Below are positions 12,565 to 41,423 of a stretch of 64,000 nt of DNA, one piece after another (position 1 is the stretch's first letter; each line of letters begins with the position of its first letter). The notes beneath the pieces were generated by a model, which saw only the letters and a list, made by a program, of their open reading frames with translations, was not told where the DNA came from and made no database searches. A program made the translations under genes and the position numbers. The DNA is taken from sequence record OP557969.1; one strand, 5' to 3'.

Positions 12565-13053
12565 ATGCCGATTCGTGGTGTACCAGACCCAATACGTGAA
12601 ATTCTTAAGCACATTCGCATTGAAACACTAGAAGTTAACATGCGTCGTTATAATATATATTACTTTAAAACTTCCGAAATGAGTTCTGTACAGATTGTCA
12701 TTGGTACATCTATTAAGATTACTCGTGTACTTGATGGCAGTACTGACTTTGTTGAATACAACGTACTTACTAATAAAGTAACACATACATATAAATGGAG
12801 TGGATATAAAACTATTAAATATGAGTTTGACTTAGCTAGAACCGAAGAAGAACGATTCATGTTGAGTACTATAAATCCAGAAAACTATCCTGACATTGAT
12901 ACATTTTTGCTAATTTTAAAATTGTATAATAAAGCAAATGAGAAAGCTAAAGAGTACAATAGAATCATGTATGAACGCAAAAAAGAACGTGTACAAAAAA
13001 GTTATGATCTGTATGATAACCCATACGTGAAATATAGTAAGGGAAAGAAATGA
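12565..13053 (+). CDS. hypothetical protein, EExxFQxS-motif family
   Basis: TEEERFMLSTIN; GAGGA RBS. Confidence 0.8.
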   Translation: MPIRGVPDPIREILKHIRIETLEVNMRRYNIYYFKTSEMSSVQIVIGTSIKITRVLDGSTDFVEYNVLTNKVTHTYKWSGYKTIKYEFDLARTEEERFMLSTINPENYPDIDTFLLILKLYNKANEKAKEYNRIMYERKKERVQKSYDLYDNPYVKYSKGKK

Positions 13054-15380: not shown

Positions 15381-15505
<125 letters not shown>

Positions 15506-15512
15506 CAAAAGA

Positions 15513-15586
15513 CGGGGTATAGCACAATTGGATAGTGCAAGAGAATTCTAATCTCTAGGTTGGGGGTTCAAGTCCCTCTACCTCGG
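15513..15586 (+). tRNA. tRNA-Arg(TCT)
   Basis: CGGGGTA/TACCTCG acceptor, AGAGA-ATTCTAA-TCTCT arm, TTCAAGT T-loop. Confidence 0.88.
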
Positions 15587-15610
15587 CCTACTTTAATTAA
15601 AGGTTAAACC

Positions 15611-15775
15611 ATGACGCATGAAGAATGGATGAATGACATTAATTTTAGATATGCAGGTATCGGTAACTGGAGAAAGTATCATTGGGAAATCATATCAGAC
15701 CCAGCAGAATACGATAAACTTATGAATCATGAAGTGTATCCGTGGTTCTTTATTGAAATAATGGTACGATTATGA
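15611..15775 (+). CDS. MTHEEW microprotein (54 aa, not in ORF track)
   Basis: MTHEEWMNDINFRYAGIGNWRKYHWE...; AAGGT RBS. Confidence 0.85.
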   Translation: MTHEEWMNDINFRYAGIGNWRKYHWEIISDPAEYDKLMNHEVYPWFFIEIMVRL

Positions 15776-15932
15776 CACATGAAGAATGGATGAATGACAT
15801 TAATTTTAGATATTCGGGTATCGGTAAATGGCTAAAGTATCATTGGGAATTCATTTCAGAGCCACATCTGTATGATAAACTTATCAACGATTCTGCATAT
15901 AAAATGTACTTAATTGAACTACTGGTACGAAT

Positions 15933-15936
<4 letters not shown>
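15772..15936 (+). CDS. MTHEEW microprotein (54 aa), tandem duplicate
   Basis: MTHEEWMNDINFRYSGIGKWLKYHWE...; ATGA overlap. Confidence 0.85.
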
Positions 15937-16105
<169 letters not shown>

Positions 16106-16108
16106 AAG

Positions 16109-16553
<445 letters not shown>

Positions 16554-16581
16554 GTATCTTAATAACAGAAGGTATATTGAA

Positions 16582-16821
16582 ATGAGTAAGTATTTTGTGA
16601 GTTATAGTTATAATGTATCACGAAAGATTCCACGTGGTGACGGAATGGGATGGTCTTATGATGCATATACTTTAAATGAGTCATGTATCATCGAATTAAA
16701 AGAAAAAGACCTTGACATTTTAAAAATCAAACAATATATTCTTGATGTTGAATTGGCACATCGTACTGATATCTATCCAGATGTAAATAACATCAGCATC
16801 TTAGTACTAACCAAAGTATAA
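16582..16821 (+). CDS. hypothetical protein
   Basis: Start moved to after promoter 16522 and GAAGGT. Confidence 0.7.
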   Translation: MSKYFVSYSYNVSRKIPRGDGMGWSYDAYTLNESCIIELKEKDLDILKIKQYILDVELAHRTDIYPDVNNISILVLTKV

Positions 16822-16827
16822 GATAAA

Positions 16828-16861
<34 letters not shown>

Positions 16862-17208
16862 GAATTCCACAATCAGACGTATATGGTGTAAGTTACGTCG
16901 ATGCAATCCAGAACAAGATCTCTGGTACTCTAGGAAGTGGTTAATGTTAACCTAGACGGGTTTGATAATTGGACGATAGGCAATTATTACTTGACTAGCA
17001 GGTTTAAACTAGAGGTGACTATCCTTCACCAAACTGGAAAACCGGATGGACTTTTATTTAAAAGGGTAAGGCGTGGAAATATGTTTACAGTAGTTGCTTT
17101 TAGTAGCCTGTACGCCCCACGTCAAGGTAGCCGAAAGGCAAGTTAAAACGGGTGGTTATAAAGCTGAATTAACAGCGGCGTTTAAAAGCGTCACCATCCA
17201 TTTTTTTT
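16862..17208 (+). ncRNA. candidate structured ncRNA (about 345 nt)
   Basis: Starts at promoter 16833-16861, many hairpins including GCC-GAAA-GGC, ends in T8. Confidence 0.55.
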
Positions 17209-17224
17209 AATTAAAGTTGGTGAT

Positions 17225-17863
<639 letters not shown>

Positions 17864-17936
17864 CTTTTTAATTTAAAAGTACTTTACTGTAGTGTTTAGT
17901 ACCGTATAATGTAAACAAAAGGATAAAATAAAACTC

Positions 17937-18461
<525 letters not shown>

Positions 18462-18483
18462 TTAAAAAATCAGTACTTTATTA

Positions 18484-18697
<214 letters not shown>

Positions 18698-18700
18698 TCA

Positions 18701-18868
<168 letters not shown>

Positions 18869-18889
18869 TTCACATGATATAGGGTACAC

Positions 18890-19147
<258 letters not shown>

Positions 19148-19159
19148 ATAAAAAGAACG

Positions 19160-19427
<268 letters not shown>

Positions 19428-19436
19428 TAATTGACG

Positions 19437-19487
<51 letters not shown>

Positions 19488-19504
19488 TACAACCGACAAT
19501 GACT

Positions 19505-19571
<67 letters not shown>

Positions 19572-19746
19572 GAAGAAACTGCTAAACAGCTTGAAGAACT
19601 TTGTAGTGCTGCACCGATGCCGACTCTTGGCTTAATCAAGTTGATGCGTCGAAATAAGAAAAATTTAAAATAATACAGTAAGATGGCCTCCCCTCCATAT
19701 CATGAGAGTATAGAGACTTGTTGGTTATCTTACTTTTAAACAAACT

Positions 19747-19820
19747 GCCTCAATAGCAAAATTGGTAATGCACACGTTTTGTAAGCGTGAGATTTTTCCG
19801 TTCGAGTCGGAATTGGGGCA
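19747..19820 (+). tRNA. tRNA-Thr(TGT)
   Basis: GCCTCAA/TTGGGGC acceptor, CACGT-TTTGTAA-GCGTG arm, TTCGAGT T-loop; CCA not encoded. Confidence 0.9.
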
Positions 19821-29548: not shown

Positions 29549-30514
29549 GTGAAAAAACTTGATTTGAATACAATTGCAGATGAAGTTCTGGATGAATGCT
29601 TTGGTAATGAAGAAGTGAATACGCTGGATGCGTTAGAACCAGTTCAAGAAAAAGATAACATTGACGAGAAAAATAATGGTAATTTCAAGTTTAATATTAG
29701 TCTTAAGCGACCAGCAAATGTAACAAATGAAGATATTATTCGTGATATTCAAGCAGGTATTAACGTAAAGAAAAATACTGAACTATTAGTTCGTTATAAT
29801 TACGGCTTGATTATTGATGTTGCAAGTAAATGCACGTGTTATATTCCATTTGAAGATAAGATTTCATATGGTATCGAGGGATTCATGCGAGCATTAAAAA
29901 CATTTGACCTTAGTAAGAATGTAAAGTTCGCTACGTATGCATCGTCAAGTATCTATATGACTGTATACAATGAAAGTTCAGATGCTAATCATCTGGTCCA
30001 TTTCCCTCGTTACATGAGTGTTAATAAGATACAAGTGAAACGCTTCTGTCATAATTATGAGCGTCAGCATGGTTGCCGTCCTACACCAGAAATTATTTCT
30101 GAAGAGACTGGTATTGAAATCCAGCACGTTAAGAATTGTTTATTATTCCAAAGTGAATATACTTCACTGGATGCACCATTGGATGGTGTTTCTGATGGGA
30201 CGATGAGTGATATTCTGCATTCATCTGAAGGTGATTATAATCTTAATGTTGACAGTATTCGTGCACCGTTGCGTTATACCATCAACGAACTAACTAATGA
30301 GTTGAGTGCTAAGGAATGTGAGATTATTCAACGTGTTCATGGGTTAGGTGAATTTAATCCTGAAACACTACGTGAAATTGCTGATAGTGGTTTTATCGAT
30401 GACAACGGTAAGTGTGTAAAATCCAGATCTTCGGTTCATCGTAAATACAGTGATGCTCTTAAGAAACTCAAGAAATTAGTGCTTGCTAAAGGGTACGAAT
30501 ACGAAGATTTCTAA
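29549..30514 (+). CDS. RNA polymerase sigma factor, sigma70 family
   Basis: Region 2 LLVRYNYGLI..EDKISYGIEGFMRALKTFD...KFATYA; PTPEIISEETG; SLDAPL; region 4 ETLREIA...SRSSV; GTG start after AGGAG. Confidence 0.9.
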   Translation: MKKLDLNTIADEVLDECFGNEEVNTLDALEPVQEKDNIDEKNNGNFKFNISLKRPANVTNEDIIRDIQAGINVKKNTELLVRYNYGLIIDVASKCTCYIPFEDKISYGIEGFMRALKTFDLSKNVKFATYASSSIYMTVYNESSDANHLVHFPRYMSVNKIQVKRFCHNYERQHGCRPTPEIISEETGIEIQHVKNCLLFQSEYTSLDAPLDGVSDGTMSDILHSSEGDYNLNVDSIRAPLRYTINELTNELSAKECEIIQRVHGLGEFNPETLREIADSGFIDDNGKCVKSRSSVHRKYSDALKKLKKLVLAKGYEYEDF

Positions 30515-30519
30515 ATTGT

Positions 30520-30547
30520 AAAGGTTGGCATATGCCAACCTTTTTTA
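30520..30547 (+). terminator. intrinsic terminator
   Basis: aaggttggc-atat-gccaacctt followed by a T-run. Confidence 0.8.
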
Positions 30548-30549
30548 TT

Positions 30550-30577
30550 GGGACAAAGCATAAATATATGATATAAT
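30550..30577 (+). promoter_or_regulatory. GGGACAA-N12-TGATATAAT promoter, copy 2
   Basis: Exact motif and spacing. Confidence 0.65.
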
Positions 30578-30579
30578 AA

Positions 30580-31036
30580 TTATGTACAATCCTGTTGAAT
30601 GCAGAAATGCATATAAATTAGAACCTGATCCTATCGAAAACGTAGATGGCAGATGAGCAGTTCAGCAGTGCGATGAGCAGAAGAAACCCGTCAGAAGTGG
30701 GCATAGTTTGAACCCCTCACGGCAATGCGGCTCAATAAAGAACTCCGATAAGCATACAGAGAGTTCCTAGATAGACATATAAGGAATCACACCTTACCAG
30801 ATTTGCTAAGGGAGTCTTGAAATAAGACAGCTTGAACTTTGATTGTATAGAGTTTCAAGTGAGTGCTGGGATGAAAAGACCAGTGACCGTTGCATATGAC
30901 CGTGATAGGGAGAAACAGAGCAACCCGCTTCCGTTTGTGATTGATCATTTTTACAATATAGATCCGTCCAAAATTCACGATACAATAATATCCGATGCCA
31001 TCAGCGTCAAGAAGAGACTTAATTGTCTCTTTTTTA
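30580..31036 (+). ncRNA. candidate large structured ncRNA (about 450 nt)
   Basis: Promoter-to-terminator unit with no credible ORF; long-range pairings 30645/30996 and 30717/30900; terminator at 31012-31036. Confidence 0.6.
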
Positions 31037-31194
31037 TTACTTTCATTCCCCTGTGGGGGATGAAATAGTCCTCAACAAATCCCGTCAAGTATTAAAAGTC
31101 CTAGACAGTTATGAAACATTCGCGTATAATACGTAGTATTAGAAGCGAACAGACATCTCGAAGAGATGGATGATTAACTATTAAGGAATATCCA

Positions 31195-31404
31195 ATGAAT
31201 TCAATCATATTTTTAGTAGTAGCTTTTTCTGTTAATTCCGGTGTACAAATAACCCCAATGAATTCCATGAATCAATGTATAGCAGTTCGTGATAGTACAT
31301 ACGAACAAGTAAACAAAAATATTAGAATGACAGTTAGTAAAGAACAAATGTGGTGTTACAATAGTAATACTAACGCAAAGCTTATTGTAGGACAAACTCA
31401 ATGA
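31195..31404 (+). CDS. small secreted/membrane hypothetical protein
   Basis: Hydrophobic N-terminus; AAGGA RBS. Confidence 0.7.
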   Translation: MNSIIFLVVAFSVNSGVQITPMNSMNQCIAVRDSTYEQVNKNIRMTVSKEQMWCYNSNTNAKLIVGQTQ

Positions 31405-31632: not shown

Positions 31633-32421
31633 ATGTGCACTATAGATGAATTAATTAGACGGAATTCAAAATACTACAAACCATCAGAAATTGTAGGCAA
31701 CATTACTAAATCAGAGTTCGGACCAAATACACGAAAACTCATTCATGTAATGTTACGTGATGGCTTTAAATGTGATTGTTGTGGTGAATCCAATGTGGTA
31801 TTCACTTTACATAAGCACAGTACTAAAGAACGTTATAAATTCAGACCTTATGTACTTAAAGGGAAACGCCTTGTACGCATGACGTTAGACCATAATGTAC
31901 TGGACTGTCTTCAGGGTGGTAATGACAAAGAAAACATGACTGCACTGTGTGAGGATTGCAATGCATTACGCCAGCATAAATTTGCTGAGTACAGTGAGTT
32001 TAAGTTCTGGTATCATAACGCAGATCGTTCCATTGAACCTGACGTTAACTACTGCTTTATTGAGTACATTAAGAATGCAAAAGATACATACATTCTTAAA
32101 TCAATGTCACCTATTACAGTGTTTCCTGAGAATCTATTCACTACATTAAAGAATAGTTTTATGGTAGGTGATATTGATGCATTCAAGTATTTTGACAAAG
32201 GTGCAAAACATTTTGAAGTTCAATGTCTTAGTACTGCACTATGTGAACTTATTAAAATTTACATAAAAGATTATTTGGGTATTGACAATGTACGCGTACC
32301 AGAGTATACTTTTTCTATTGATTTCGATTGTGAATCAATCAAAGAGTTTGGGATTCTTTTCAATAAACAAATAGAACTTGCAATTCAAAACGAAATCAAG
32401 TACTATAATACTAACATTTAA
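31633..32421 (+). CDS. HNH endonuclease-domain protein
   Basis: RDGFKCDCCG ... MTLDHNV...GGNDKENMTALCEDCN. Confidence 0.8.
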   Translation: MCTIDELIRRNSKYYKPSEIVGNITKSEFGPNTRKLIHVMLRDGFKCDCCGESNVVFTLHKHSTKERYKFRPYVLKGKRLVRMTLDHNVLDCLQGGNDKENMTALCEDCNALRQHKFAEYSEFKFWYHNADRSIEPDVNYCFIEYIKNAKDTYILKSMSPITVFPENLFTTLKNSFMVGDIDAFKYFDKGAKHFEVQCLSTALCELIKIYIKDYLGIDNVRVPEYTFSIDFDCESIKEFGILFNKQIELAIQNEIKYYNTNI

Positions 32422-40935: not shown

Positions 40936-40963
40936 GGGACAAACCTTCCTATAATGATATAAT
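40936..40963 (+). promoter_or_regulatory. GGGACAA-N12-TGATATAAT promoter, copy 3
   Basis: Exact motif and spacing. Confidence 0.65.
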
Positions 40964-40996
40964 TTTTTTGTCAGTTTATTTAAATGACATATGAAA

Positions 40997-41004
40997 TATA
41001 AATA
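40997..41004 (+). promoter_or_regulatory. T4-type late promoter TATAAATA
   Basis: Exact T4 late consensus upstream of 41040; second copy at 41463-41470. Confidence 0.6.
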
Positions 41005-41039
41005 TTATTGTAAAGTTTATCTCTTATAGGAGTTATAAA

Positions 41040-41423
41040 ATGGTTGATAAATGGAATAAGAAAGAACCATCTCATGATGTGGATATTTCTGACCTAGATA
41101 ATGAACATAAACACAAGTACCTAGATTCACTAGGTCTACTAAAGCCGGACCAAAGTATTGCACATGATCGTCCTTCACGTGAAAAAGCATTCAGTCTGGA
41201 ATCTCTAGGTCATGAGCTAAATCGTGTGTTTGAAGAACACCCAATCTATGTACGTGATATTATTGAGAAACTTAAAGTAACTCCTAAAGAGCACTTTAAA
41301 GCAACTGTACACTCTGCATTCAATGCATTACATGAAGCACTTAAGAAAACTCACAACCTTCGTAAGATTCATGATGATATTGTAAATGCAATTGAAAGTG
41401 AAAAACATAAATTCAAGAAGTAA
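41040..41423 (+). CDS. charged protein, possible late/internal virion protein
   Basis: AGGAG RBS, late promoter; shares YLDSLGLL...EL..VF...P..V..I...L...PKE with the next gene. Confidence 0.8.
   Translation: MVDKWNKKEPSHDVDISDLDNEHKHKYLDSLGLLKPDQSIAHDRPSREKAFSLESLGHELNRVFEEHPIYVRDIIEKLKVTPKEHFKATVHSAFNALHEALKKTHNLRKIHDDIVNAIESEKHKFKK

Follow-up and report, generated by a model that had tools for sequence, protein, structure and literature searches.

A pseudoknotted RNA cassette present in several copies in RaK2-like jumbo phages and shared with integrating chromosomal islands

A stretch of about 450 nucleotides (nt) directly 3' of a sigma factor gene of Escherichia phage ph0011 was found to belong to a sequence family that conserves an RNA fold of 15 helices and four pseudoknots, supported by roughly 80 distinct homologues. 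The window analysed here is the final 64 kb (64,000 nt) of the ph0011 record (OP557969.1, Asteriusvirus, 348,217 bp), to which the flagged stretch is 100% identical; coordinates are those of the window and all features of the unit lie on its plus strand. On balance we lean towards reading positions 30548–31036, with a conserved tail to about 31096, as a copy of a self-standing gene cassette whose product is a pseudoknotted non-coding RNA (ncRNA). This RNA would be made early by the host polymerase and act as a stable molecule in trans. Transcription itself, its early timing, the stability of the product, its action in trans and a binding partner are what we infer for this RNA. An earlier note, made from the letters of the window alone, had proposed a new large structured phage RNA similar in kind to GOLLD and ROOL, and this proposal is strongly supported by the unit's own signals, the lack of a conserved frame, covariation in about 80 homologues and the absence of any Rfam match.

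Homologues conserve an RNA fold

Helices were derived by scanning all pairs of alignment columns for complementary runs that co-vary, followed by counting of pairs. The homologues comprised 42 unique copies and later about 80 distinct ones, taken from phage records, IMG/VR, metagenomes and bacterial genomes. The structure that RNAalifold derived from a raw MAFFT alignment of the full-length unit was poor, and this approach was replaced by the column-pair scan and by one covariance model per domain. The models were built from nested helices only and were used to align 99 hits for the 3' domain and 97 for the 5' domain. On plain MAFFT alignments 90.4% of cells in the 3' domain were paired, as compared to 37–46% in slid controls, with compensatory changes in 38 of 52 pairs, while the corresponding values for the 5' domain were 92.8%, 28–41% and 27 of 38 pairs. 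A conserved structured RNA was thus apparent on alignments that had not been fitted to any structure. On the model-built alignments the paired share rose to 92.8% in the 3' domain (82 distinct sequences; slid controls 37–48%; 42 of 52 pairs compensatory) and to 95.6% in the 5' domain (80 distinct sequences; slid controls 29–40%; 31 of 38 pairs). Compensatory changes were accordingly present in 73 of 90 pairs over both domains, and not one of 500 shuffles of these alignments reached the observed paired share, number of covarying pairs or covariation score in either domain.

The four pseudoknots PK1–PK4 provide a further line of evidence. As they are absent from the covariance models, the alignments were not fitted to them, and still they pair at 84–100%. 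G-U pairs are tolerated on this strand, which indicates RNA rather than DNA, and insertions and deletions fall at the tips of hairpins. Taken together, this shows that selection acts on the RNA fold and not on the DNA sequence or on a message.

The first element of the RNA is P1 (30598–30612, ATGCA/TGCAT), a 5' hairpin for which each paralogue, judged by eye, carries a different self-complementary sequence. P2 (30625–30652) is a bulged hairpin with the conserved loop GAAAACGTA that is 96.6% paired and shows compensatory changes in 7 of 8 pairs. It is followed by P3 (30657–30671, GCA/TGC), a short hairpin, 100% paired with 2 of 3 pairs covarying, whose loop looks by eye like the T-loop of a transfer RNA (tRNA). 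P4 joins 30674–30678 to 30730–30734 (100% paired, 4 of 5 pairs covarying) and encloses P5, in which 30688–30691 pair with 30719–30722 (99.7% paired, 3 of 4 pairs covarying), together with a variable extension of P5 that is short, long or, in some homologues, exchanged for a UUCG tetraloop. The 5' domain further holds the hairpins P6 (30740–30766, GAACTC/GAGTTC; 96–97% paired, 6 of 6 pairs covarying) and P7 (30780–30796, TAAGG/CCTTA; 89.6% paired, 4 of 5). PK3 links the P6 loop AGCA (30751–30754) with TGCT (30804–30807), a strand located immediately 5' of the invariant TAAGGGAG; it is 84% paired with 3 of 4 pairs covarying, an example pair being GC in 37 sequences, UA in 27 and AU in 5. PK4 links ATG (30725–30727) with CAT (30776–30778), is 98.3% paired with 2 of 3 pairs covarying, and is the weakest of the four pseudoknots because it is short.

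P8 (30814–30828, GTCTT-GAAAT-AAGAC) leads on to the 3' domain. In P9, 30830–30841 pair with 30848–30860, with T30853 bulged and the loop ATTGTA between the strands, and 11 of 12 pairs covary; P10 (30864–30885, TGCTG/CAGTG) is 93.8% paired with 4 of 5 pairs covarying. The trio P8-P9-P10 was also recovered by single-sequence folding in nearly all of the 42 homologues so folded. The whole P9 loop (30842–30847/48) pairs with 30980/81–30986 (ATACAAT) to form PK2, which is 99.2% paired with 6 of 6 pairs covarying in 82 sequences and for which nine different complementary sequence pairs were found by eye. Its geometry fits an ordinary intramolecular pseudoknot in which one nucleotide, G30841, spans the groove. 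PK1 (P11) pairs GTTGC (30889–30893) with GCAAC (30920–30924) in the P13 loop and is 100% paired with compensatory changes in 4 of 5 pairs. P12 joins CGTGA (30901–30905) to TCACG (30975–30979) and is 98.8–100% paired; 3 of its 5 pairs show compensatory changes when the sequences are aligned by MAFFT, and 4 of 5 when they are aligned by the model. It encloses P13 (30908–30912 with 30928–30932, 100% paired) and the variable arm P14 (30934–30937 with 30969–30972, 87% paired). The weakest helix is P15 (30994–31008, GATG/CGTC), a short hairpin with the conserved loop CCATCAG that is 63–70% paired as aligned and for which variants such as GACGA/TCGTC and GAAGA/TCTTC were seen by eye.

Of the architecture drawn in the earlier note the local hairpins stood and the long-range contacts did not. 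The three hairpins it had named, GAACTC/GAGTTC, GTCTT-GAAAT-AAGAC and CTTGAACT/AGTTTCAAG, are P6, P8 and P9 and all covary. Its two long-range helices and its pseudoknot were wrong because their strands pair elsewhere with covariation. GATGGCA at 30645 and TGCCATC at 30996 sit in P2, which covaries locally, and in the constant loop of P15. Of the proposed TCACGG (30717)/CCGTGA (30900) helix, CGTGA at 30901–30905 belongs to P12, with TCACG at 30975–30979, and ACGG at 30719–30722 to P5, with CCGT at 30688–30691. CCTATC and GATAGG show no covariation, CCTATC being the 5' strand of P2. The real long-range contacts are the four different pseudoknots described above.

Near-invariant joining strands run between the helices (GATGAG, AGAAGAAAC, CAATGCGGC, TAGATAGACATATAAGG, TAAGGGAG, GACCGTTGC and GATAG..GAAAC) and are taken here as a putative functional core. 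A peripheral module of about 45 nt containing TACAATATAGATCCGTC is carried on P14 in the window copy; other copies have it on P8, where the insertion measures 40–60 nt, and some have it on both arms. As the module swaps between these two arms, their tips are suggested to lie close together in space.

The unit has its own signals and no conserved reading frame

The annotation of the record leaves 680 nt without a feature between the end of the sigma gene (30514) and the start of the next gene (31195). Pfam assigns the product of the gene 5' of the unit to the sigma-70 family, with regions 2 and 3 present and region 4 weakly matched, in line with the position that had been claimed for the unit. 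The sigma gene is closed by an intrinsic terminator with a 10-bp stem and a T run (30520–30547; called at 30520–30543 by the consensus scan), outside the RNA, for which the sole echo in Rfam was a sub-threshold match to a terminator-like small RNA model. Consensus scanning then located a sigma-70-type promoter at 30548–30577, consisting of TTGGGACA, a spacer and the extended -10 box TGATATAAT (10 of 12 matches, TG present), which is kept at the same place in all four ph0011 paralogues and across genera. The same scan placed an intrinsic terminator at 31009–31034 (taken here to extend to 31036) that is 94.7% paired with 6 of 6 pairs covarying; it is discrete in about two thirds of family members and missing in about one third. 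The predicted transcript of about 453 nt thus runs from 30584, as judged from the -10 box, to the terminator end at 31036. Its minimum free energy is -116.6 kcal/mol (z = -3.28 relative to shuffles), and the GC content is 0.40–0.44 within the unit versus 0.30–0.38 in the flanks. The RNA unit, its promoter and terminator signals and its non-coding nature, as first described from the sequence, are therefore confirmed.

The promoter form GGGACA...TGNTATAAT occurs in three copies in the window, namely at the RNA unit, at 15381 and at 40936. At 15381–15505 GGGACA, a spacer and TGTGATATAAT lie about 10 nt 5' of the first tRNA of a cluster (15419–19820) in which Rfam identifies seven tRNAs, and a metatranscriptome contig connects a promoter of the GGGACA type to the 5' end of this first tRNA. 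The third exact copy (40936–41423) drives the gene of a 127-aa protein, and the form is for this reason regarded as a general early type rather than one specific to stable RNAs. Farther 3' of the unit, the gene annotated as an HNH endonuclease in the record (31633–32421) had no Pfam match at E values up to 0.01.

The sole sizeable open reading frame (ORF) in the unit (30832–31068, 78 aa) has no Pfam match, its frame is interrupted by stops in 38 of 41 homologues, differences in length are not multiples of three, and no reading frame is conserved among these 41 homologues. The claim that the unit holds no credible ORF is upheld by this. Public records nonetheless place short hypothetical ORFs over the RNA gene in RaK2 (locus L036, 322–975), 7t3 (L028), Hallingskeid (L032) and others, the longest annotated ORF across it being 217 aa on the opposite strand, and the UE-S1 record annotates part of the element as a repeat region. 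Such annotations would favour a small protein gene or a DNA-level repeat, for instance a miniature inverted-repeat transposable element or a set of binding sites, over an RNA gene. This is barely credible given the broken frames, the compensatory changes with G-U pairs on one strand only, the four pseudoknots, the lack of visible terminal inverted repeats and the synteny of the positions across genera. The annotated small ORFs are very probably spurious.

The family occupies fixed positions in RaK2-like jumbo phages

A sensitive blastn search of 50,697 phage records placed the family at 302 positions in 73 records, with 3–5 copies in each. All 73 are RaK2-like jumbo phages (RaK2/121Q group), from the genera Asteriusvirus, Mimasvirus (GAP32, CBB, XbC2), Eneladusvirus (BF, fHe-Yen9) and Alcyoneusvirus (RaK2, K64-1) as well as from unclassified phages of Salmonella, Erwinia and Xanthomonas. 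The positions are syntenic across genera; the copy adjacent to endonuclease VII, for example, recurs in 7t3, Hallingskeid, fHe-Yen9-03, XaC1 and UE-S1. Two further loci (L044 and L048) were discarded as chance pattern matches inside unrelated coding sequence.

Phage ph0011 carries four copies, at about 61 kb, 116 kb, 199 kb and 315 kb of its genome, the last being the window copy. The other three adjoin endonuclease VII (199 kb), adjoin a structural gene or lie between hypothetical genes, and are 73–94% identical to the window copy in aligned blocks. Over the core, the window copy is 97% identical to the endonuclease-VII copy of ph0011 itself, and in a maximum-likelihood tree of 77 distinct copies it falls inside the Asteriusvirus endonuclease-VII clade. 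We read it as a recent copy or gene conversion of the endonuclease-VII copy. A copy directly 3' of the sigma gene is also found in RaK2, in K64-1 and in two metagenomic contigs, and the position may therefore be ancestral. In a further metagenomic contig (L159, 94–1561) a full element is located 5' of a sigma factor gene and a partial element 3' of the same gene.

The earlier note had suggested from position that the RNA could be a decoy of RNA polymerase or sigma factor. Such an RNA would bind either the sigma-70 holoenzyme of the host or the sigma factor of the phage and set the time at which early transcription gives way to late, in the manner of 6S RNA, and its own sigma-70-type promoter would allow a feedback loop. 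The recurrence of the post-sigma position in ph0011, RaK2, K64-1 and two metagenomic contigs speaks for it. Direct support was not obtained; the other three copies in ph0011, and the other 2–4 per genome in general, lie elsewhere. Moreover, the window copy arose recently by duplication of the endonuclease-VII copy, the 6S covariance model gave no match and the fold departs from the rod with a central bubble of 6S RNA. We consider this role very improbable.

The cassette is carried by chromosomal islands

The whole cassette was present in 2 of 5,426 complete E. coli genomes, with 68% identity to the window copy. Pattern scans and nhmmer additionally located it in Silvania hatchlandensis, Enterobacter chinensis, a Serratia sp., a Buttiauxella metagenome-assembled genome, Enterobacteriaceae RIT714 and many metagenomic contigs, while none was found in the plasmid collection. 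The island of E. coli LR-29-1, of about 10 kb and located beside ffs (L056, 7958–18302), encodes a serine recombinase and an integrase interrupted by IS3 in addition to the RNA cassette. It also carries a three-gene candidate defence system, PDC-M45 (DuOB, DUF488 and mSLOG-DUF4326), and iteron-like ATCGATCGTT repeats about 400 nt 3' of the cassette (L056, about 12970–13025).

In a second locus (L112, 3817–12232) the order is an integrase of the large serine or tyrosine type, the RNA cassette, a CI-like S24 repressor, a Cro-like protein, a 286-aa protein, LprI and an invertase, and parts of this order recur in 6–11 of 14 loci. The 286-aa protein had no assignment in Pfam, NCBIfam or PADLOC and no tblastn match in phages. 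As no capsid, lysis or replication gene was recognised among the conserved island genes, the integrating element of Enterobacteriaceae may be a satellite. Comparison with the phage genome outside 204–284 kb revealed the cassette as the only sequence shared by island and phage apart from a DUF4326 domain.

The E. coli island copy groups with the endonuclease-VII copies of Eneladusvirus (80.6% identical by blastn; tree support 99/98). The other islands form a clade that includes phage copies, and phage and island copies are interleaved in the tree. Since the E. coli copy and the other islands fall in separate groups that each contain phage copies, the tree calls for at least two transfers of the cassette between jumbo phages and the islands.

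These transfers bear on the possibility that the RNA is a decoy or sponge directed against a host defence or a host RNA-binding factor, with the islands carrying it either to impair the phage or to profit from it in the same way. Early expression from a host-type promoter would fit, the cassette is portable between phages and islands, and the E. coli island also bears PDC-M45. Against this, nothing in the RNA resembles a known decoy, and the idea is improbable.

Conserved sequence beyond the terminator

Conservation continues past the terminator into a tail (31041–31096) that is conserved in sequence and shows little covariation. It consists of a GC-rich hairpin (31041–31065) followed by the motif CAAATCCCGTCAAG (31076–31089), and these motifs were found nowhere else in the window. 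CAAATCCCGTCAAG repeats ATC..CGTCAAG from upstream of the terminator, so that a direct repeat (31000–31011 and 31078–31089) lies on either side of the terminator and GC hairpin; a single variant, CTTCAAGAAAT, occupies the two repeats in RaK2. The repeat may provide an alternative pairing with the 5' strand of P15 or a protein site, and the tail as a whole may be RNA made by read-through, a transcript of its own or a site in the DNA. In copies that have no terminator, about a third, the GC hairpin stands directly 3' of P15. Most members conserve about 100 nt more past the tail, including two small hairpins with covarying stems, a segment that the window copy does not have beyond 31096. This second module (for example L008, 710–840) comprises GAATTGAG, a hairpin with the loop GAACGAAGTGA, AACGAAAATTC, TTTGAC and a 13-nt palindrome (CATTCGAAGAATG) with covarying halves; it is a candidate small RNA, operator or next promoter.

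The tail is central to the main rival explanation, a replication origin, which we regard as unlikely. Here the host polymerase would make a structured pre-primer that reads through the GC hairpin into the AT-rich tail, where a persistent RNA-DNA hybrid would prime a T4-like replisome in the manner of ColE1 RNA II or of the T4 transcripts from ori(uvsY) and ori(34). An infecting jumbo phage would then replicate the islands. T4 has several origins per genome and both replicates and packages plasmids that bear them; ColE1 RNA II is structured and about 550 nt long. Several observations agree with this model: copies are dispersed in each genome at positions conserved across genera, the conserved unit runs past the terminator and includes a hairpin of a C run and a G run and an AT-rich stretch, and one third of copies have no terminator before that hairpin. 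In addition, no replication gene was recognised among the conserved island genes, and the cassette is the sole sequence these have in common with the phage. In most copies, however, a strong intrinsic terminator stands directly upstream of the supposed start, and four pseudoknots with an invariant single-stranded core exceed by far what is known of primer RNAs. In the window copy, moreover, the part of the tail beyond 31096 is lost.

Proposed mode of action

A stable RNA acting in trans is favoured over the alternatives because the core is compact and conserved, the promoter is its own and of an early type, and the terminator is usually its own as well. In the proposed course of events the host sigma-70 polymerase would initiate at the strong extended -10 promoter, yielding an early RNA, and stop at the intrinsic terminator. 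The transcript would then fold into a 5' domain of P2–P7, locked by PK3 and PK4, and a 3' domain of P9–P15, locked by PK1 and PK2, with the variable peripheral arms (P1, the P5 extension, P8 and P14) arranged around the near-invariant joining strands. Free and stable, the RNA would act in trans through this conserved core as a specific binding or catalytic site, the 3–5 copies per genome serving dosage. As a unit the cassette is portable, having been copied within the ph0011 genome and moved between jumbo phages and islands.

Read data were evaluated as contigs from four runs, mapped onto the unit with 5 kb of flank. One run, clearly DNA of a related phage, gave even depth that rose over the multi-copy unit, and the coverage in a wastewater metatranscriptome was thin and scattered. 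The libraries X1 (labelled RNA, marked as probably DNA) and X9 (labelled RNA) yielded contigs only inside the unit, apart from one weak 37-nt piece in the flanks. One piece from an RNA-labelled library matches 30679–30837 exactly, and a second, starting 8 nt before 30586, carries the leader of the endonuclease-VII copy at its beginning. Confinement of contigs to the unit hints at a stable RNA, a hint confounded by copy number, conservation among relatives and carry-over of DNA.

Some points weigh against a trans-acting RNA. This read support is thin, with depths of 1–6 in contigs only, and confounded by the four-fold copies and their conservation. Action in trans leaves unexplained why some 60–170 nt past the terminator are conserved and accompany the gene, in islands too, and why a third of copies have no terminator. 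Paralogues at fixed dispersed positions across genera would suit a cis-acting element as well.

Significance

Few large RNAs combine many pseudoknots with an invariant core, and past examples have been ribozymes, cores of ribonucleoproteins and, recently, cages made of RNA only. We tentatively raise the possibility that the present family represents a new phage RNA class whose core is ribozyme-like or forms particles, that RaK2-like jumbo phages need it and that minimal integrating islands have repeatedly acquired it from them. If this were true, a new kind of satellite would use the cassette as its handle on a virulent jumbo phage, either exploiting the phage or blocking it, for instance through being replicated via the cassette or through diverting the partner of the RNA. 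That the cassette is the sole sequence link between island and phage is a hint that jumbo phages and small mobile elements are connected in a way not recognised so far. The system is tractable: about 80 distinct sequences are at hand, E. coli phages such as 121Q, PBECO4, phAPEC6 and their relatives can be cultured, and the diverged copies within each genome amount to natural mutants. A covariance model would also correct the records that carry spurious small ORFs over the RNA gene.

Comparison with known RNAs

The 4227 families of Rfam 15 matched only tRNAs in the window at gathering scores. Relaxing the threshold to E values of up to 10 for 30400–31300 returned terminator-like or chance matches only, and at E values of up to 5 in ten homologous loci no family had more than one match inside the element. 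The classes without a match include GOLLD, ROOL, OLE, raiA, RNase P, transfer-messenger RNA (tmRNA), 6S, group I and II introns, HEARO, pRNA and hammerhead. ARAGORN found no tmRNA or tRNA gene in 30400–31300, and no hallmark of tmRNA, RNase P or group I/II introns had been recognised in the earlier note either. Likenesses noticed by eye to the hammerhead core (CAGATGAG...GAAAC) and to a segment of E. coli RNase P (AACAGAGCAAC) were dropped, as key positions differ and the Rfam models gave no match. With no match in Rfam 15 and no description found in the literature, the 450-nt RNA is regarded as a new RNA class.

A role like that of 6S RNA has been suggested for the present RNA, which in some genomes has a copy beside a sigma gene. 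6S RNA is a rod-like duplex with a central bubble that binds the sigma-70 holoenzyme; the present RNA has a multi-domain, pseudoknotted fold and no match to the 6S model. The likeness to ColE1 RNA II and the T4 origin transcripts consists of a dedicated promoter for the host polymerase, a length near that of RNA II and conserved DNA downstream. It differs from these in the terminator placed before the downstream element, in its four pseudoknots and in that no antisense partner was seen. Like phi29 pRNA it is a structured RNA encoded by phages, with a hairpin loop that base-pairs to a complementary strand, and this pairing covaries between relatives. However, pRNA is about 120–174 nt long, is encoded by a single copy and engages in intermolecular loop-loop pairing, whereas the geometry of PK2 fits pairing inside a single molecule and the Rfam model had no match.

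PA5oct, a jumbo phage that is a distant relative in the same clade, expresses four ORF-free ncRNAs of 236–619 nt as determined by RNA sequencing, two of which account for 1–5% of phage reads (PMC7318152). Homology to ncRNA001 and ncRNA002 of that phage was rejected, since the covariance models R1 and R2 had no match in their stretch (L055), and no similar blocks were seen by eye. GOLLD and ROOL are large ornate RNAs that are often encoded by phages or prophages and that form homo-oligomeric cages as seen by cryo-electron microscopy (PMC12286853). The present RNA is like them in being large, heavily structured and phage-encoded, in having several pseudoknots and in having its own gene. In contrast to them it is smaller, at about 450 nt, and shows no relation in sequence or structure by the Rfam models. 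It is further set apart by its 3–5 diverged paralogues per genome at fixed positions, by the tail conserved beyond the terminator and by being shared with integrating islands.

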